A stretch of DNA of 64,000 nucleotides from Blepharisma stoltei ATCC 30299 (Eukaryota > Protista > Ciliophora), in NCBI GenBank assembly GCA_965603825.1, contig CBFDEM010000030.1, positions 248,001 to 312,000 of the forward strand. The letters run 5' to 3'. Positions 4,553 to 59,112 of the stretch are shown piece by piece (the stretch's first letter is position 1; the number at the start of each line of letters is the position of its first letter). A program made the position numbers and the translations under genes. The notes under the pieces are model-generated. The model was not told the DNA's origin, did no database searches, and saw only the letters and a program-made list of their open reading frames with translations.

Positions 4553-7500
4553 TTATTCTTTTTTTGATAGTTCTTCCAAATTTTTTTCATAATTTTTGAT
4601 ATTTTCATTTACATTTTCTATGCAAAAATTGATTTCAGGGCTGAGTCAAAGCCCTACACAATCCCATAGTGGCTTGGCAACGACTTTGAGGAAACCAATT
4701 TCATTTTTATAATAAATTAAAGGCTGGTTAATATCTTTCATATGCTCCGTCAATGGCAGACAATTTGCCACTTCCTCTCTATACTGCTTATAAAATTCCT
4801 CACATACAAGTTTTGACCACATTGTATAAGTTTGATTATTTTTAGCACTATGAGCTAAATCTGCCACATGAATTATAAATGCGGCAGTTTTTTCGCAGTC
4901 ATCGTCAATAGATCCTAAAGGCCTCTCATTCAGATCTTTAAACCTATTACTCATATTAGAAATCATATTAAAATGTATGGCCATATCAGTATCCAATATA
5001 CATCTTATCATTAATTTTCTGACCCCTTTTAGCATATTTGTCGGGACCCCTTCAAGGATATTACAAGAGTCATTTTGTAATATATGAAAAGTTAAGGCAG
5101 AGTGATGGTTTTCTAAGACTGACTTATCATTATAGGTAATCGCATATTGACTCGCCCTATTTATTTCGAAATTGTTGGTATGGCCTGTATGACCAATATC
5201 GTGGCATAGAGCAGCTATTAGCTGTGCGTAAATTTCTTGAGTTTTGAAGACCAAACCTGCTGCAGTGGCTGACAATAAGTAATAGCTTGAATGCATGACT
5301 GTAAAGCCATGGTAAAAGTTGTGGTAAGGATTGGTATAAGTCTGATAATTCTCTTCTACTTTTGATACAAAGTTTGCCAGCCTAGCATGTTTTATATCAA
5401 AGATATTGATTAAATCAAAGTTTTGTAGCATAGCTTTGATATAAATTAGATGGCAGCTTATATCAAAAGCATTGAGGTTCCAGTTTCTAAGTTCTTCTAG
5501 TTCTGATGCCAGCTCTCCATCTTTATCTCCACTATACTTTCTTTCTCTAATAACAGGACTTCTTAGCCCTCCTTGCTCACTAGTATCAGTGTATTCATTA
5601 ATAATGCTTATAAGCTCATTTCCTTTTGAATGCATATCGATAGGTATCTTTATTTCAGTGCGATTGAGGTTTCCTTGCTTTAATGTGTTTATTACATCAA
5701 TTACTTGTAAATAAGTATCTGAGTTGTGGTCGAAATCTTGGGATATTATTGAAAGCTTTTGGATGCATTTTTGTAGCGATGTTTCAGCTTGAACTGAGCT
5801 TGTAAGGACGTCTAATTGGTTTTGCATGGCTGCGAGCTTAGAGTTTAGCTCTTCAATCGCTGTGGCATCTTCTAGAATTATAACAACACCTGAAGTTTCT
5901 AAAGTAATAAAATCTTGTAAAGGAACTAGTGTATAATTAAAAGGCAAGGAGTCTTCTCCTGCAATTATAAGCTCTTCTCCGCTTCCTACATGATATTTAT
6001 GTGGATTTTTTATCAGTCTCTGTGATTTTTTGTATATTTTTTTCTTGGGATTTTGAAATATTGCATTGATGTCGAGAACTAGCTGTCTATTATGCTTTAG
6101 CCATGAAATATAGCTTGAATTCTTCGCAGTTGCTTCAGTGATTCCTAAAATCTCTTCAAATGATCTGTTATTATAATAAAGTTTTCCACTACCATCTACA
6201 ACTAATATATAATTCCCAAGGCTATTTAATATATTTATAAGCCTTGTCCTTTCTTCGATATTTTTATCAAATAATTTTCAGCCTTGCAAAACAACGCCTA
6301 CAAGCTCGGCAAAAATTTCCAAAATGTCTTCATCATTTTGGTCAAAAATCCCTTCATTTTTGTTTAACATCTGGAGGACTGCGATTGTCTCACCATTGCA
6401 GTCTAATACAGGCATACATAGAATATCGTGAGTACGATAGCCAGTGAGATCGTCAATTTCATGATTAAAACGGAAATCTTGATAAGCGTCACATATAATT
6501 TCTGTTAGGCCGGTTTGGGCGACATAGCCTGCTATTCCTTTGCCTAGAGGGACTTCGAAGTTTGTAGGGATTTCTTGTTCTGAGCCTTGGACTTTGACGA
6601 CTAAAGAATTCCCTTCACGAATATAAACAGTAGCTCGGTCACAGTCAAGTAGCTTTTGAGAAGCGTCACGAATTGTGCTGATAATTGAATAAGTGTTGAT
6701 ACTTGTAGCATGATGCCGAATTAAATGCCGGAGTTTGGTGACATCGTGGCTTTTTTCGTTTTTATCACTTTTCAAAGCTTTAAAAACTACCCTAGCAACT
6801 TCTCCTATAATATTCTTGTCTTCCTTAGTAAAGTTGCTGAAAAATGTCCAAGTTTCATCTTTTTTATTTCATACTTCAATTACAAATGCATTTTCATTTG
6901 AAACATAAGGAACCATCATCATATTTTCTCTTCCATACTCCTTAACAAACATCAATGCTTTACCTGTTTTAATCGAATTTTCATACAAGGCTTGCATCTC
7001 TGCTGACAAAGAGCAGCTAGTTTTTCCTTGTGCTATTGAATACTCATAAATTACTCCATCATTTTTGTAATAACCATTCACCCCTTCACAATAAATTAAA
7101 GCTTTGATTATTTCTAATGACGAAATAACCAAAATATCAACGCCATTCTCAGTAGCTAGCCTTTGGAGTATATTTTTAGCTAAAAGGTGATTGCTCTGCG
7201 CAAAGTTGGAAACTGCAAAAACCTGCTTGCATCATTGTTGCAAGAGTTTATTTTTTTCTCCTTCTTTTACAATAGTTTTCCAGTCAGATTGCGGAGGGTC
7301 ACTAATTTTTATATTAAAATTATCATGCTCGATTGTTATAGGGTTGGGCCTTCTATGTCTATGTGACTTTGACAATTGGTCTTTTTCATTATTTGAAATT
7401 ATTAGTTCATCTGAGACTTGATTTTCTTTTTTCCTAGAATTTACTAGTTCAAAGACCATCATACCAACTGATTGGACTATAAGCGCATCATTCGACGTAA

Positions 7501-8032
7501 AATTAGTTATCAGGCCCAAAGGATCAATTTTGTTGCATAACACTACCACTCCATATACTTCAGTTTTATCAGCATTGGAAATAGGAACTGCACAGATGCT
7601 TTGTAAGTTTTCATCAGAGTTTATTCAGTCTCTCCCTGGCAATCAATTTTCAGTAAAGCTTGCATAAAAACTTGATTTCTGAGGGTCGTTTATAATTTGA
7701 TATAGGTTGGTGTCTGCCACAAAGCCAGGGAGATTTTTTGAATTGATTTCCAGGAATTCAAAATTTTCTTTATTTCCTGAAAATTTCAGCCTGCTTTTCT
7801 CTTTTATAAAGACTTCGACTCTTGAGGAAGAAGTTAAGGCTTTGCATGTTGATTTTATTGAGGGTTCAAGGTCAATTGGGGAGATGGCATCTAGTTGAAA
7901 AATTTTGGAAATTTGTTTAGCACAGTGGTATAAAAGGTCACCTACTCCAGCAGGAACAAGAATTAAGGCTTTTTCTTCGAGCTCTGCTTCATTAAAGTCA
8001 GATAGGTTTCTTTTAGGGTTTTGAGGGTTCAT
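4553..8032 (-). CDS. GAF/PAS-containing class I 3',5'-cyclic nucleotide phosphodiesterase
   Basis: Five ORF fragments in one frame joined by TGA. GAF (GKGIAGYVA, FNHEID), PAS-like segment, PDE motifs YHNFYH, HDIGHTG, LENHH, TDM, ADL. Confidence 0.92.
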
Positions 8033-51870: not shown

Positions 51871-54018
51871 TTAATATGGATTTTTCCTTCTACTAGATGA
51901 TCCAGCTCTCAATGGAATGCTTGGCTGAGTATTTCTTTGTGGCTTCACCAATATTGGCTGCCCAGATGCACTTCGAGTTTTTAAATGAGAAATTTGAGTT
52001 TTTGCTTTTTCGTTTCTTTTCTGTCTAAGCGCTTCTCTAGCTTTTGACGCGAATTCTACGACCATTCTCCTCTTATTATCTTCTATTTCTTTTGAATCTA
52101 ATTTCGCTTGCTCTTCTTCAAACTTGCATCTTTGCTGAAAGTCTCTTTGTTCTTCGTCACTATATATTTTTTTATTGTATTCGTCACTTTTCATTATTTC
52201 TTTAGAATTAATAGCAGTATTTCTTACATTGGCTGAAGAATCTTCTATAAGAAATTCTGTTAAATTTTCAACCTGATATATTTGACGATCAGGAATTACT
52301 TCACGAATAATAGGCAAAATCATTGCGATTTTCAATCGAACCGAATCTATTAGATCATGGGAAATATTAAGAATTTCATCAAAGAAATTTTTGGAAAAAT
52401 ACTCTTTTGATTGATAAGACATTGAAAACTCTATGAAATCTATAAATAAAATCCTATCATAACAGCTTGAAGACCGAGCAAATTTATCTTTTATGCTGTT
52501 AATGATTTCAAGCTTACGGGAAGTATAATGTGTGTGGTATAAAATTCTGGACAGCACTCTAGCTGACAGCAGTTTTAATGAAAAATTATCATTCTGCATT
52601 TTTTGAAGTAAAATTGGTACAATATTTTCTAATAAATCGTTTATGTGAAAATTCACAATATTTTCGTTTAGTATTTCTAAAAATTTGATCTGTTCTCTTC
52701 AATTTCCAGTCTGTATAGAATTTGTTATTTTTCCAAGGATCGAAATACTCGATATCCTACTTGCTCACCATTGTGCATTTTTTATAATAAAAAATTGACT
52801 CTCTTGGTCTTCCAGCAATTGTGTCGCTAAAAATGCAATTGTTTTACAAGAAATATCAAGTTTACTGATTTCGTGAAGTCCTTTCGCTATAGCAATTTTT
52901 ATTTCAGATTCAGCATCATTTACAAACCTTGTTAAAATGTCTTTCATGATTTGACAAGTACCTAATATTGAGAAAATAGCTGGAAAATTATAAGCTATGT
53001 TTTTCCTAACAATAAAGTCAGAATCCTTTAAAAATAATAAAGACTTTAAAAAGGATTCTCTTATATCAGGAGAAATTAAAGGTTTGATGGATATCAATAA
53101 TTCTCCTATCAGCTCAGAAAATATATGCTGGATCTCAATATGCGTTTCCACAAGCAATTCTTTCTTTATGACAGGAATGGCATGGCGAGATATAAAATCT
53201 TTTGATAGAAACGGAATAACTTTTATTAAACAAACGACAGCTTCAACTTTGACCGAGATTACTTCATCGTCTACAAGTTTAAGAATTTCATAAAAAATTT
53301 TTTCTTGAATTTCATTTTGCGATTTATAATTGCAGATTTCTATTCAAGTAATGCACATTTCTTGCCTTACTTCTGAATCAGTATCTTGAGACAAAGCTTT
53401 GGCTCTTTGAAATAATTGGCCTTTAAATCCAAATTTTATTTTCTGAGCAATGATTTTTAATAGCTTGCAAGAAACATGCCGAAATACAGGTTTTTGGTTA
53501 AAATCAGATAAGTCAATAGTGAAACTTATTGCTTTTTCTATTTGAGTATTAGAAATTCCACTAGAAATGACACAGGCAAATACCTGGATTCATGTTTCAT
53601 GAAGGCTTGTGGCTAAAGATCTTAAAATAGAAATGCAGACTTCAAGAATTTCTTCGCATAGTCCTTGGGGAAAAATTTCTTGTTTTACTGCATTGATAAC
53701 TCCTTGGCCAAATGCTATTTTTAGTTCTAAATCTCAATCTTCTGCATTAAATCTATTCTTCACAAAATTAAACATTCCTTCAAAGTTTTCCCTGAAGATT
53801 TTGTCAAGATTTTGCAGAGCCCACAATTTTTGCTGGGGAAATCCAGACTGCAAAAAAATCATTCCCTTTTCAAATTCAGAAATCCCTTCGGTTGTAGATC
53901 ATAACTGGATTTCTGCCTCTGTCTAATTGTGAAATACCTTTTTCGTCCCTGAAATTCCTTCAATCTCGAACTGAGTTTCATTAAAATAGCTCTTTCCGTT
54001 TTGCAAGGCAGAGACCAT
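51871..54018 (-). CDS. HEAT-repeat phosphatase regulatory subunit (PPP4R4-like)
   Basis: HEAT repeats (D..VR), N-terminal KTEAEI..FLQSG..Q..ALQNL pattern; intron 53923-53937. Confidence 0.75.
53923..53937 (-). other. 15-nt intron GTATTTCACAATTAG
   Basis: GT-AG with in-frame TAG. Confidence 0.85.
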
Positions 54019-54076
54019 AATTATAAATTAAATATTCCTGATATTTTTAATAAATCAAATCGATATTAAATAATGT

Positions 54077-55339
54077 TTATCTAGTAAAAGCTTTAAGCAC
54101 GATAGAGCTAAACGCAGACCCATCGTAATTCACTGCATTAGCGACGACTGCTCTCAGTTTCTGTTCCCTTACATTTGTTACAAAATTAGGGGTAACTCCG
54201 TCAACACTTAGTGGATTTTCGAGGTTTGTAATGGGTGGAATGAGTCCTTGCTGAACTGAAATTGCAGCCGCTCCGACGTTGGTTGAGCTAGAAGCACCCT
54301 GCATATGTCCAAGTCCTCCTTTAATTGAAGTAACTGCTGGGGTTTTTCTTCCGAAAAGTCTTAAAATAGCTGAAGCTTCACCATAATCCCAATCAAAATT
54401 GCCTGAAGCATCTCCAAATACAGCATCAATATCGTTTGGAGTTAGACCTGCCTGTCTTATGGCGTCTCTCATAGATCTATAGACTCCGTTTCCATCTCTC
54501 TTTGTATGGTCTCCAGCTTCTGAAACCATTGAGAATCCAGCAAGCTCTGCATAGATCTTGGCACCTCTATTTAATGCATGTTCTAATTCTTCAAGAATTA
54601 TAATGCTACCTCCTTCACTTAAAATCCATCCTTTTCTATTTGCATCAAATGGTTTGACTGATCCTTCAGGGTTCTTTTCAGCTTCCAAATTATAGCCATA
54701 ATTTCCTTTTTCCAAACTCTGAAGCCAAATTGCATCTAATTCTGGCTCAATAGACCCAGCAAGCATAACAGTGGCTTCTTCTAATTGAATTGCACGATAT
54801 GAAGTCCCAATCGCATTGTTGCCTGAACAGTGTCCTGAGCACACAGTATCAGCAAAACCTCCTAATTTGTGATATATAGAAACTGTACCTACAATTTTGC
54901 TTGGGATGCCATAAAGCGCGAATAATTTATCAGTAGCGTCATATCCAGACTCAGTAATTTCTTTTTGCATAGGACTCAAAGTTGCTGTATCGGTTCTTGG
55001 GCATCCTAATAGAAGACCTGTCTTGAACTTTTCTTCATCATTAGTAGTTTTCCAATTGCTGTCAGTTAAAACTTCTTCGCTGCAATTTAATGCTAGCGCA
55101 TGATAATGGTTTCTCAATAAATTTGACTTTTCTAAATAAGGCTCTTGGTCCCAGTTCCATAAGCGTCCAGCCACTTTTACTTTAAGTTGATCAGCAAATG
55201 TAAAATCTGAAGCACTAAGCTTTTTTAAGCCTGATTGTTTTGATAATAGGCCTGAAAATGTAGCTTGAGCATTCAAACCAAGAGGAGTAATCATACTTAG
55301 TCCAGTGACTACGACTCGTTTTAGATAAGGGGCTGCCAT
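54077..55339 (-). CDS. Ketosynthase-fold protein lacking the catalytic triad (chain-length-factor-like)
   Basis: RVVVTG, PFD..R.G..LSEGG..LEE. The Cys motif reads SGHCSG and the first His motif reads DAVFGDASG. Confidence 0.85.
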   Translation of the reverse strand: MAAPYLKRVVVTGLSMITPLGLNAQATFSGLLSKQSGLKKLSASDFTFADQLKVKVAGRLWNWDQEPYLEKSNLLRNHYHALALNCSEEVLTDSNWKTTNDEEKFKTGLLLGCPRTDTATLSPMQKEITESGYDATDKLFALYGIPSKIVGTVSIYHKLGGFADTVCSGHCSGNNAIGTSYRAIQLEEATVMLAGSIEPELDAIWLQSLEKGNYGYNLEAEKNPEGSVKPFDANRKGWILSEGGSIIILEELEHALNRGAKIYAELAGFSMVSEAGDHTKRDGNGVYRSMRDAIRQAGLTPNDIDAVFGDASGNFDWDYGEASAILRLFGRKTPAVTSIKGGLGHMQGASSSTNVGAAAISVQQGLIPPITNLENPLSVDGVTPNFVTNVREQKLRAVVANAVNYDGSAFSSIVLKAFTR

Positions 55340-55554
55340 TTTGTTTATAATTAGGGTGAGATCCGTTTTAAGATTTCACACAAAATAAGACTTGATTAGG
55401 AAAAGAAAAAAATCTATAAGAAAAATTTAAGCATCGAGTTTAAAAATAATAGTAAAATATCAATAAAAATTATAAAATATTCTTTGACTTAAGTTTTTTA
55501 TATGAAAATATATAATCTTAATAAGACATGTGTGATATCCGTTTATAGTTAAAA
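55340..55554. promoter_or_regulatory. Putative bidirectional promoter with two ATCCGTTT motifs
   Basis: 215-bp spacer between divergent KS-fold genes; motif at 55361 and 55537. Confidence 0.55.
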
Positions 55555-56835
55555 ATGGCTTGGAACCAACTTAGAAATGCAACTGGTAGAAGAGTAGTTG
55601 TCACTGGAATGGGACTGACTACACCTATTGGAAATACATTACCACAAGCTTTAGATGCCCTTATAGGTAGAAAATCAGGTGTAAAGCCCCTTAATCATCA
55701 ATTAATGCCTGATCTTGACCAAATCCCAGTAAAAATCGGAGGTTATTTAGATGTTGATTACGAGTACTGGAAAAACATGATGCCGTGCAACAAAACAAAA
55801 ACAAATGTCCATGGATTTTCTGCAGTCTACAAAGCAATGCAAGATAGTGGTTTCAGACCATCTTCTGAAGAAGAAAGAGAAAGATTTGGCTGCATCATGG
55901 GCGCAGGAGTCAGCTCTGTCTTTGAATTTATGGGAGGTCTTCATGACGTTTACGCAAATGGATCGAATATTGATATAATCCCAGCAGACTATGCTGAGAA
56001 AATTGATATTAATGGCCTTAACAATATAATCAGTCGCTATTTTGGAGCAAAAGGACATACAGAGGCTGTGAGCCCAGCTTGCGCTACAGGCCATGCTGTA
56101 GTCCAAGAAGCTTTTAGGAGCATCATGCTAGGAGAGTCTGATGTCTGCATTGCAGGAGCTGCTGAGACCATTGTCCATCCAGTAATCTTAAAAGGATTTG
56201 CTTTACTGGGCTGCATTAATACCAAGAGCAACGAAAATCCAGCAGAATCTTCAAGGCCATTAGACGAAAATAGAGAAGGTCTTGCAGGTGCTGACGGAGG
56301 AAATGCTGTAATTCTTGAAGAACTTCAGCATGCTCTGGCTCGAGGAGCTAAAATATATGGAGAAGTTAAAGGATACAACATGAATTGTGATGGATTTCAT
56401 CTAACCAAGCCAACACCTAGAGGTGAAGGGATTTACCGAACAATGCTAGGTGTACTAGGCATGACTGGGATGAGGCCAGAAGATATTGATTTAGTGCTTG
56501 CCCATGCAACTGCTACAAAGGCTGGGGATTTCGCTGAGGTGAATGCTATTGACTCAGTGTTTGGAAACTTGAGACCTCATATTACCGCTGTGAAAGGGCA
56601 TACTGGGCATATGATGTGCGCTGTTGGGACTTTCCACGTCATTTCAGCATTACTTATGATTTCTAATGGAGTAGTTGCACCAATTATGAACTTGAAAAAC
56701 CCATTGAAAATCAATGGTAAAGAACTCAATTTTGCCAAGGAGCCGGTTTATACACAATTGAACAATGTTTTAATAAATGCAGTTGGGTTTTCGGGGATGA
56801 ATAATTCTTTAATATTATCAAGATACGCACCTTAA
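55555..56835 (+). CDS. Beta-ketoacyl synthase (FabF/KS-alpha type) with intact Cys-His-His triad
   Basis: RRVVVTG, SPACATG, AHATAT, KGHTGH, GFSGMN. Confidence 0.92.
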   Translation: MAWNQLRNATGRRVVVTGMGLTTPIGNTLPQALDALIGRKSGVKPLNHQLMPDLDQIPVKIGGYLDVDYEYWKNMMPCNKTKTNVHGFSAVYKAMQDSGFRPSSEEERERFGCIMGAGVSSVFEFMGGLHDVYANGSNIDIIPADYAEKIDINGLNNIISRYFGAKGHTEAVSPACATGHAVVQEAFRSIMLGESDVCIAGAAETIVHPVILKGFALLGCINTKSNENPAESSRPLDENREGLAGADGGNAVILEELQHALARGAKIYGEVKGYNMNCDGFHLTKPTPRGEGIYRTMLGVLGMTGMRPEDIDLVLAHATATKAGDFAEVNAIDSVFGNLRPHITAVKGHTGHMMCAVGTFHVISALLMISNGVVAPIMNLKNPLKINGKELNFAKEPVYTQLNNVLINAVGFSGMNNSLILSRYAP

Positions 56836-57057: not shown

Positions 57058-59112
57058 TTAAGCCCTTCTATTTTCCTGGACAATATTTATCCATTTCGGT
57101 TTTTCATAGCACTCAGGAGCATCTTCTACCACTTTTGTATATCTTTCATAGATTTGTCCATCGCTATGGCCTAGAGGTGACGCTATAACATGGTCTGGGA
57201 ACGCAAGAGCGTCAATAATGTTAACAGAGTTTTCACCAACTTCATTGCAATATTCAACTACGATTTCATTAATCCACTTGACTTCGTCTTCGGTAAATTG
57301 AGTTTTAAGAGCTCCTGAATCTGTTTCTAAGATATGATTCGCATAAAGAACCAATATACTTAATATAATATCGCCTGTATTTGCACAGGTTTGGGCTAAC
57401 TCCTGTTTAAAGTTAATAAGTTCTTTTAATAGAACTAGTTCTCCACAAATCTGAGGGAGTACGAATAGCTGCCTTACTTGAGTATTGTCCCAAGCAATTG
57501 CCATGCTTGGGTAATTCCCCATGTTTTCTTGGAATTTGTTTAGTGCTATAGACAAGTAATAATTGCACCTGTACTCAAATAAAGATACCAAAAACTCAGG
57601 ATTTTTTAATTGGTCTTTATTTTCGAATTTCGGCTTTGTAGGTTGAAGATTGATAAACTGCAAATATTTTGATTTAACAGTTTTTCCGCCCATAGCTGCT
57701 TGTGCAGCTTGCAGGATGTATCTCTCTGCTGACTGTATCAAAATATTGCTGTCTCCATCAGTCGTTATGATTGCGTCGCAATCTTGCTTGAGCTTAATAA
57801 ACCCAGCATAAGTTGAATACCCATGGCCTCCACAAGCCTCTCTACATTCTTGAATTGTTTTAAGGTTATTCCACACGTTGACTGCTTTGAATATAGTTAC
57901 AAGCCAACTAAAATCGCTAATTTCATTAGACTCAGGATTGGAGCGTATAATAAGCATGCTTTCATTATATGCTTTTGCTATCAGCTTTGTAGCCATATTT
58001 GATGCGAATAAGGTAGCTAAATGCGGCATTAGTCTATATCTGTGCAGCTGATAGTCAAGAATAGATTTTTCAGTGTCTCCACCAAACTGTTTTCTGATAG
58101 CTGCATATCTAATCGCAATTGTAAGAGCATTTCTAGCATAGTTTTCAGTGCCAGCGAAGCAAACTATTCTTCCACAAATCAAAGGCGAAACAGTTATTCC
58201 GAACCTTCTAGCGTGGCTTTTAATTGAGCTTTTAAAGTCCCCTTCTGGCGTGATTTGTGCAAATCTGTCGAGTAAACAATCATATGGAGCTTTATAATTT
58301 TTGAAAATCAAAAACCCTGTGTCGTTTCCATTTAGCCCAGCCATTGGACCACAGTTTCCAACGGTGATTCCGTTTAGTGTCTCGTGAGTTTGGTTATCTC
58401 TAACCTGGACAACAAATGCGTGGACTCCATAGTTCGTATCTTTAATAATAAGTTGGGCAAAAATAATCGCCATATTTGCGATTTTACCGGCGTTGCCAAT
58501 CCACCATTTAGCTGCAGTTGGTGTTGGGGAAGTTATTGTAAATTCTTTTCTCTCTATATCATATTTTGCAGTTGTTTCAACTTTTGCGAGATTGGACCCA
58601 TGGCCAATTTCAGTCATTCCTAAGCATCCAAAGTCTTTTAATTCGTAAGCGCGCTTTATCAAGTTCGCATGCTTTTCTGTTGATAAATAAGTAAGCATTT
58701 CTGCGTATAAAAGGAGCTGCATGTGCCCTCTTGAAGTCAAATTTATATCATTTGTGCAGAATGAGACTACAATTGATAACTTTTTCAGAGGATTCTTTAA
58801 ATCTTCTTCGAGCGTCAGTCCACATTTTGGGAACAAGTACATAAACTGACGAATGCTTCGCTCTTCTAAGGCATCTTTTGATAAGCCGGTAGCTAAACAA
58901 TGGTTAAATAAGTCTTCTCTTTCTTTGATAAGGCTCCATTGGAGTTTATACATTTCACCAAAAGGTTCCAACATTTTGTCGTGGAGAAGGGTTTTATTGA
59001 ATTTTTTCCCACGAGCTCTGTATTCATCTAAGGAAAGATCTTTGGACTCAAACTGGAAAGAGCCAAGAAGGTGAGAGTTAATGAGATTGAGACGCACTCT
59101 TGTTGCTTCCAT
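57058..59112 (-). CDS. Peroxisomal acyl-CoA oxidase-like protein
   Basis: MTEIGHGSN, KWWIG, AIRYAAIRKQF, CREACGGHGY; PTS2 RLNLINSHL. Confidence 0.92.
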   Translation of the reverse strand: MEATRVRLNLINSHLLGSFQFESKDLSLDEYRARGKKFNKTLLHDKMLEPFGEMYKLQWSLIKEREDLFNHCLATGLSKDALEERSIRQFMYLFPKCGLTLEEDLKNPLKKLSIVVSFCTNDINLTSRGHMQLLLYAEMLTYLSTEKHANLIKRAYELKDFGCLGMTEIGHGSNLAKVETTAKYDIERKEFTITSPTPTAAKWWIGNAGKIANMAIIFAQLIIKDTNYGVHAFVVQVRDNQTHETLNGITVGNCGPMAGLNGNDTGFLIFKNYKAPYDCLLDRFAQITPEGDFKSSIKSHARRFGITVSPLICGRIVCFAGTENYARNALTIAIRYAAIRKQFGGDTEKSILDYQLHRYRLMPHLATLFASNMATKLIAKAYNESMLIIRSNPESNEISDFSWLVTIFKAVNVWNNLKTIQECREACGGHGYSTYAGFIKLKQDCDAIITTDGDSNILIQSAERYILQAAQAAMGGKTVKSKYLQFINLQPTKPKFENKDQLKNPEFLVSLFEYRCNYYLSIALNKFQENMGNYPSMAIAWDNTQVRQLFVLPQICGELVLLKELINFKQELAQTCANTGDIILSILVLYANHILETDSGALKTQFTEDEVKWINEIVVEYCNEVGENSVNIIDALAFPDHVIASPLGHSDGQIYERYTKVVEDAPECYEKPKWINIVQENRRA

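Follow-up and report, generated by a model that had tools for sequence, protein, structure and literature searches.

Background

To our knowledge, condensing enzymes in which an active ketosynthase (KS) is joined by a dead KS-fold partner have been described only in bacteria and in fused domains of polyunsaturated fatty acid and polyketide synthases (PKSs). We analysed here a pair of this kind, the genes alpha1 and beta1, in a ciliate. The pair lies in a stretch of 64,000 nucleotides of Blepharisma stoltei ATCC 30299 (contig CBFDEM010000030.1, positions 248,001 to 312,000 of the forward strand), hereafter called the window, whose first letter is position 1 of all window coordinates.

In the actinorhodin KS and chain-length factor (CLF; 1TQY), as in the Blepharisma pair, an active KS with a Cys-His-His set and a full-length partner devoid of the nucleophile are encoded by adjacent genes, and the partner carries Asp at the first catalytic His, within a stretch of the form F-[AG]-D-[AG]-[SA]-G...EA.AI..(V/L)FG. 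Several features nevertheless set alpha1 and beta1 apart from bacterial KS-alpha/CLF pairs. They are divergent, whereas the bacterial genes are co-directional and translationally coupled; the catalytic Cys, typically replaced by Gln in the bacterial partner, is His170 in beta1; the Lys and second His, missing from the actinorhodin CLF (TTTGRL), are retained in beta; and no acyl carrier protein (ACP), cyclase or ketoreductase gene adjoins alpha1/beta1, unlike in bacterial type II PKS clusters.

A second set of systems, which we take to be suitable for comparison, consists of KS/CLF-type heterodimers of highly reducing or non-aromatic type II pathways and comprises the ishigamide pair Iga11/Iga12 (6KXD), the Photorhabdus anthraquinone pair AntD/AntE (6SMO), the cispentacin pair AmcF/AmcG and the aryl-polyene KS pairs. 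In these, a stand-alone FabF-like KS is combined with an inactive partner that can do without the glutamine of the CLF, and the products need not be aromatic decaketides. Matches to them were weak (6kxd_A, 103 bits; 6smo_B, 105 bits; the AmcF model NF058662, 103-144 bits and far under its cut-off). Unlike the Blepharisma genes they are bacterial, operon-encoded and of separate origin, and no specific relationship was detected.

The closest lineage is that of the mitochondrial KSs, namely human OXSM (2IWY/2C9H), Arabidopsis mtKAS (1W0I) and fungal CEM1, which are likewise stand-alone proteins of about 420 amino acids (aa). They are self-priming, in line with a Blepharisma genome in which no FabH was found, and their partners ACP, MCAT and HTD2-type dehydratase are all present there. 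The absence of a long presequence is also shared, e.g. with a fungal protein (P0266) that is given as mitochondrial in its source and starts with MAGRRVVVTG. On the other hand, mitochondrial KSs are single-copy homodimers with two active sites, whereas Blepharisma has three active and five dead paralogs, with remodelled pocket and interface loops and a stem branch of 0.48. Mitochondrial KSs also usually feed the lipoate pathway, whereas LipA and LipB were not found in a six-frame first look at the Blepharisma genome.

An active and a dead ketosynthase encoded head to head

Alpha1 and beta1 are probably the two subunits of a heterodimeric condensing enzyme that was derived in ciliates from OXSM/CEM1 and works in a KS-CLF-like manner. 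Alpha1 would carry out the decarboxylative Claisen condensation of malonyl-ACP with the growing acyl-ACP, and beta1 would be the obligatory structural half of the dimer, shaping or closing the acyl pocket at the interface, as a chain-length factor does in bacterial type II PKSs. Three such alpha/beta pairs would operate within an expanded mitochondrial-type toolkit of eight KSs, about ten ACPs, two MCATs and one phosphopantetheinyl transferase (PPTase). We infer the formation of the heterodimer, the chain-length role, the compartment and the acyl or polyketide product from the lines of evidence given below.

Beta1 occupies positions 54077 to 55339 on the reverse strand and encodes a stand-alone KS-fold protein of 420 aa, of the beta-I subclade, whose catalytic site is dead as judged from its residues. 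Alpha1 (55555 to 56835, forward strand) encodes a stand-alone KS of 426 aa with what reads as a full catalytic set. The AT-rich spacer of 215 bp between them (55340 to 55554) presumably houses the promoters of both genes, and we infer a shared or bidirectional promoter in it. The Pfam domains PF00109 and PF02801 span both proteins over their whole length (E 1e-24 to 1e-31), although the two are only 30% identical in a pairwise alignment, and the top NCBIfam model for each is FabF, with scores under its cut-off. The reading frame of beta1 runs unbroken through 420 codons, in DNA at 37% GC, and contains six TGG and no TGA codons; alpha1 has two TGG and no TGA, and each gene stops with TAA. Two divergent KS-fold open reading frames with a 215-bp spacer, the inactive one of full length with six TGG and no TGA codons, were what the first-pass annotation, made from the letters alone, had described. 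The reading frames, Pfam matches and codon counts agree with it. Its remark that no ACP or cyclase was recognised in the window also stands: no such gene was found within the 64 kb, nor any ACP match on the contig carrying the pair.

As for the catalytic residues, alpha1 has Cys176 (ACATG), His317 (AHATAT) and Lys347/His352 (KGHTGH) in place and retains the gating loop as GFSGMN; it is predicted to be catalytically competent. In beta1, the Cys column holds His170 (SGHCSG), with Cys171 beside it, and the first His is replaced by Asp310 (FGDASG), while Lys340/His345 (KGGLGH) are retained. The motif alignment thus confirmed both the full triad reported at first for alpha1 and the two substitutions reported for beta1. 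Alignment with the relatives showed in addition that beta1 and the whole beta clade have lost the GFGG gating/oxyanion loop and carry NYDGSAF, one residue longer, instead. In the beta clade, the Cys column and the residue after it read HC, NC, HS, DS, IP, LV, FV, NA or FT. Cys171 was considered as a shifted nucleophile and discarded, the residue not being conserved across the clade. Concerning the SPFF(V/I)P loop, which in FabF and OXSM forms part of the dimer interface and of the wall of the acyl pocket, the alignment shows it rewritten in both the alpha and the beta clades.

The resemblance of beta1 to a CLF is confined to part of the protein. Over residues 288-352, its best PDB match is the actinorhodin CLF chain 1tqy_B (E 4.5e-8), above every active KS, with FGDASG...EASAILRLFGR aligned to FADGAG...EARAIGRVFGR and Asp at the first catalytic His in both; the CLF-like stretch noted in the first-pass annotation is therefore recovered by alignment. 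Its N-terminal half (residues 100-215) matches only FabF and OXSM. As a whole protein, beta1 scores 176 bits with Brucella FabF, 168 with Arabidopsis mtKAS and 149 with human OXSM vs. 109 with the actinorhodin KS-alpha, and there is no CLF chain among its best 60 PDB matches. A protein language-model search placed beta1 nearest to clusters labelled 'minimal PKS chain-length factor' (0.97), which is a lead only, and alpha1 among FabF-type clusters. Because the tree described below puts beta1 in the mitochondrial KSs, its CLF likeness is best read as convergence, i.e. beta1 would work like a CLF without being one. The same substitutions recur when a KS subunit turns into a non-catalytic partner.

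Descent and distribution of the family

A tree was built with IQ-TREE (LG+C20+F+G4) from 52 sequences, consisting of the eight Blepharisma KSs, their relatives, named eukaryotic mitochondrial KSs and bacterial FabF. All ciliate-type sequences form one clade (support 100/100, stem 0.48) inside the eukaryotic mitochondrial KSs (OXSM/CEM1), adjoining alphaproteobacterial FabF. The latter are supported at 100/100 and the split of eukaryotes plus ciliates vs. bacteria at 100/99, and a quick tree agrees. Named neighbouring rows are Pichia, Hartaetosiga, Vaucheria, Neoconidiobolus and Coemansia. The alpha clade is supported at 100/99 and the beta clade, with at least 15 sequences from several organisms, at 99/94, its two subclades beta-I and beta-II reaching 100/100 and 100/99, respectively. 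Both clades are old.

Because the tree nests the clade in the eukaryotic mitochondrial KSs, the family arose from OXSM/CEM1 by duplication inside the ciliates. The tree holds no bacterial KS-alpha or CLF sequences; taken with its nesting, the bit scores given above place alpha1 and beta1, in all likelihood, outside the bacterial KS-alpha/CLF lineages. Membership in that bacterial family had to be given up, both genes being nested in the OXSM/CEM1 clade. The first-pass proposal of a minimal KS-CLF system in a eukaryote survives in part: an active KS with a conserved and transcribed dead partner is there, but it does not belong to the KS-alpha/CLF lineage. Bacterial contamination or recent transfer was rejected on the grounds of a telomere-to-telomere contig set, of TGA-Trp codons and 15-nt introns in the paralogs, and of the eukaryotic position in the tree.

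All relatives of alpha and beta that carry a name are from heterotrichs, namely B. stoltei, an MMETSP1395 transcript, Stentor coeruleus, in which only alpha2 was seen, and Climacostomum virens, with a copy that is dead and divergent. Further relatives lie on eukaryotic contigs of metagenomes and sequencing runs, with beta-I and beta-II together in some samples. A halophilic heterotrich such as Fabrea is the suspected source of the very compact contigs among them. When metagenomes were scanned with the beta profile, only bacterial FabF at 29-34% identity was obtained among the matches listed; three of the loci (L110, L124 and L125), from human-gut metagenome assemblies, were left out. On one very compact eukaryotic contig of a metagenome, a beta-II-type dead KS (L036/L037, 6001-7188) is followed within a few bases by a weak Complex1_LYR Pfam match (7178-7528). 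Members of the Complex1_LYR family bind acylated mitochondrial ACP.

Ketosynthase paralogs and the type II toolkit of the genome

The B. stoltei assembly (41.46 Mb, 64 contigs) was searched in six frames with the PF00109 profile. The published somatic genome consists of 41 Mbp in 64 telomere-to-telomere contigs, reads UGA as Trp, has introns of 15-16 bp and misses less than 2% of the BUSCOs (PMC9942806). Eight stand-alone KS genes were found, plus two weak thiolase-like matches. By similarity and motifs, three are active alpha genes (in the window and on contigs C52 and C2) and three are dead beta genes (in the window and on C46 and C64), while the remaining two, gamma (C53) and delta (C41), are dead as well and diverge further. 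The existence of a separate OXSM, a check suggested at first pass, was looked into: no canonical one was found, and the three alpha paralogs are the only active KSs in the genome. Alpha1 and alpha2 are 54.3% identical and beta1 and beta2 53.8%; the values fall to 41% for alpha1-alpha3 and 36% for beta1-beta3.

TGA-Trp codons and 15-nt introns are present in the KS paralogs. Alpha3 (L001, G000:C2) and delta (L008, G000:C41) each carry a 15-nt in-frame insert with a TAG end at the same alignment position (VRLI*, VIFI*), which may be read as a common tiny intron older than their split. All eight KS proteins begin 1-12 residues from the RRVVVTG core. This core begins at residue 7 in beta1 and 12 in alpha1, and no exon upstream of it appears in the RNA contigs.

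Apart from the KSs, the genome holds about ten small ACP genes, each with an Arg-rich, presequence-like N-terminus, two MCAT genes, one ACPS-type PPTase gene located at G000:C46:746.9k and an HTD2-like hotdog dehydratase of 152 aa (L128). Since this dehydratase exists, a reducing cycle of the fatty-acid type is possible. Single-domain short-chain dehydrogenases/reductases are numerous, and 35 genes encode medium-chain dehydrogenases/reductases (MDRs; PF00107), partly in tandem arrays (G000:C15:583-600 kb and G000:C32:587-591 kb). From their translations, one of the three best MDRs is like class III alcohol dehydrogenase and two are like quinone oxidoreductase, and none was singled out as MECR-type. 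No type I (multi-domain) KS was found by the PF00109 search, and the genome search likewise returned no type III PKS, FabH or FabA/FabZ. The only match to an aromatase/cyclase family in the genome was a single COQ10-like one to PF03364, on another contig. No candidate was obtained for LipA (TIGR00510) or LipB (TIGR00214), although a first look in six frames cannot prove that they are absent.

The toolkit is thus made of the parts of a mitochondrial-type type II fatty acid synthesis (FAS) system, with KS and ACP expanded and without the lipoate pathway. The lack of LipA and LipB candidates in the presence of KS, ACP, MCAT, PPTase and HTD2-like dehydratase suggests that lipoate is salvaged and that the type II system serves another purpose. 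The compartment of alpha1 and beta1 is probably mitochondrial, given the OXSM descent, the N-termini of the ACPs and fungal CEM1-type proteins that also lack a long presequence. Concerning the product, a fatty acyl chain is possible because the dehydratase exists and no other FAS was found. A polyketide is equally conceivable, given that the searches returned no other PKS and that the lipoate route seems to be missing.

One of the two canonical ACP copies of mitochondrial type (G000:C53:865289-865483, L015) is found some 7 kb away from the gamma KS (G000:C53:857478-858185, L004). For eight KSs and ten ACPs in 41 Mb, the chance of any KS-ACP pair at 8 kb or less was estimated at about 0.03.

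Evidence for a partnership of alpha and beta

The three alpha genes are matched by three beta genes, with near-equal divergence of the pairs. In the tree, alpha1 is sister (100/100) to an alpha2 group made of Blepharisma alpha2, Stentor SteCoe_13749 and a saltern-type metagenome sequence, and beta1 is sister (99/97) to a beta2 group made of Blepharisma beta2 and a beta from the same kind of contigs, so that the alpha and beta topologies match. The terminal branches of alpha1 (0.55) and beta1 (0.70) are both long vs. those of alpha2 (0.08) and beta2 (0.19). When modelled as a complex, alpha1 and beta1 reached a score of 0.95 vs. 0.15 for the best of three controls, and beta1 was docked where KS dimers canonically meet. 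The runs shared at least 95% of contacts, and the predicted local confidence (pLDDT) of the partner was at least 92. The mark used for such scores is reached by 51 of 78 solved complexes and by 2 of 108 mismatched pairs.

Several observations weigh against a dedicated heterodimer. KS-fold dimers are well known, and the complex model may recall them, without discriminating hetero- from homodimers. The alpha/beta pair of the window is the only one of three in the genome to be physically linked, and alpha and beta are not neighbours at any other locus examined: no KS adjoins the Stentor locus L011, the saltern-type loci L034-L037 and L041, or loci L038-L040 and L141-L148. Among the annotated proteins of Stentor coeruleus, word-indexed searches, which are not exhaustive, found no beta ortholog; in a library clustered at 50%, close relatives are hidden behind representatives. 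There are also five dead vs. three active copies, gamma and delta having no obvious active partner. Finally, the Cys column of the beta clade holds H, N, D, I, F or L and in no case the Gln of aromatic CLFs.

Conservation and transcription of the pair

Of the 44 positions without variation among the other ten beta sequences of the alignment, 43 are conserved in beta1. Four public runs, all from one study, contain the locus; their type was guessed, and their behaviour is that of RNA, since three of the four lack a spliced 15-nt intron near 53923 and intergenic stretches are empty. This intron is in a weakly covered gene upstream of beta1. Separate contigs span 54071-55337 and 55559-56828, and 55410-55543 is uncovered in all four runs. 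As this part of the spacer is uncovered while both genes are covered, alpha1 and beta1 yield separate divergent transcripts. Contig depths of the two genes were 193/217, 160/137-148, 262/287 and 74/64 in the four runs, hence of the same order within each run, vs. about 5 for the gene upstream. Expression is poorly reflected in contig depth, and these values serve as a hint only.

Minor RNA contigs show 16 variant sites in alpha1, 16/16 of them synonymous, and six in beta1 (about five codons), where Q364I and T371K are the resulting protein changes. A possible source of these contigs is the second mating-type strain of the published time course (PRJEB45374; PMC9942806). The MMETSP1395 transcript P0122 is 83% identical to alpha1, and no close ortholog of beta1 was found in the searches. 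The first-pass annotation held that beta1 does not look like a decaying pseudogene. This is upheld by the 43 of 44 invariant residues, the losses shared by its clade, the transcription and the full frame, and beta1 does not appear to be decaying.

Alternative explanations

It is possible, though unlikely, that alpha is a plain homodimeric OXSM-like KS of a mitochondrial or sole type II FAS, and that the dead copies are independent pseudoenzymes, e.g. acyl-ACP-binding or structural proteins of mitochondrial complexes. The descent from OXSM/CEM1 and the mitochondrial-type ACPs fit such a system as they stand. The excess of dead over active copies (five vs. three), by which some dead copies must go without a dedicated partner, points the same way. 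Against it stand the 3:3 parity, equal divergence, matching topology and parallel acceleration of rates of alpha and beta. The genomic context can be read both ways. Alpha and beta are unlinked outside the window, a beta-II gene adjoins a Complex1_LYR gene and the gamma KS has a canonical mitochondrial-type ACP 7 kb away, as independent pseudoenzymes would allow; against this, the pair of the window is linked divergently over 215 bp and jointly transcribed. The remodelling of interface loops in both clades also speaks against unrelated fates, and so, as weak evidence, do the confident heterodimer model and the dimer-interface fold kept by beta.

A role in pigment synthesis is doubtful. It would make alpha1/beta1 or alpha2/beta2 the minimal type II PKS for the aromatic backbone of the hypericin-like blepharismin (stentorin in Stentor). 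An earlier transcriptome survey of these ciliates found no PKS (PMC5029157), and in the literature searched no paper names a synthase for blepharismin or stentorin. The KSs described here are the only PKS-capable condensing enzymes found, in a genome where no type I KS, type III PKS or FabH turned up, and with LipA and LipB not found, the classical lipoate role does not explain why KSs were retained and expanded. The case is thus indirect, proceeding only by elimination and by taxon distribution. That distribution is itself two-sided: the named relatives are all from heterotrichs known for polyketide-type compounds of the cortex (Blepharisma, Stentor, Climacostomum), but alpha1/beta1 orthologs were seen only in Blepharisma, whereas the pigment class is common to Stentor too. 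The CLF-like convergence of beta1 would suit a PKS, but the family is OXSM-derived and not KS-alpha/CLF, all ACPs have mitochondrial-type presequences, no aromatase/cyclase family was found in the genome except the COQ10-like match, and the HTD2-like dehydratase makes a reducing cycle possible.

A broader statement, still more tentative, is that the heterotrich photopigments are built by an independently evolved type II PKS, in which a duplication of OXSM gave rise to an active alpha subunit and its dead counterpart beta, the two converging on KS-CLF down to the His-to-Asp replacement. If true, it would rank as the first native eukaryotic type II PKS. Because neither a type I nor a type III PKS was found in the genome, the three alpha/beta pairs offer a short list of candidates for blepharismin and stentorin synthesis, and RNA interference by feeding is already in use in Stentor (PMC13291615).

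That beta1 is a functionless, decaying young duplicate of a KS gene is highly improbable: its lost catalytic residues, its branch of 0.70 vs. 0.19 for beta2 and the two of about five variant codons that alter the protein (Q364I, T371K) could be taken that way, but it has a full 420-codon frame, belongs to a clade of at least 15 sequences with the same losses, keeps 43 of 44 clade-invariant residues and is transcribed in four RNA-like runs.

For the OXSM-derived heterodimer, the combination of an active KS with a dead KS partner is a known principle; its independent origin from a eukaryotic mitochondrial enzyme is not known, nor is an expansion of this extent. The literature searched contained no report of a KS/CLF-like pair or of a chain-length factor in ciliates. 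The design has apparently arisen a second time, in a eukaryote and including the His-to-Asp replacement, which provides a natural experiment on what a partner of the chain-length-factor type needs. Should the product be a fatty acid, eight KSs and about ten ACPs in a genome where the lipoate genes were not found would amount to a new variant of mitochondrial lipid metabolism.

Neighbouring genes

The neighbours of the alpha1/beta1 pair are genes for an acyl-CoA oxidase, a P-type ATPase and a HEAT-repeat protein. A peroxisomal location of alpha1 and beta1 was considered because of these neighbours and rejected, neither protein having a type 1 peroxisomal targeting signal (PTS1) at its end or an RLx5HL motif. 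The acyl-CoA oxidase gene (57058-59112, reverse strand) lies tail-to-tail with alpha1, encodes ACOX domains and is covered by RNA-like contigs. Its protein is probably peroxisomal, because its N-terminus, MEATRVRLNLINSHL, matches RLx5HL, the minimal pattern of the type 2 signal (PTS2).

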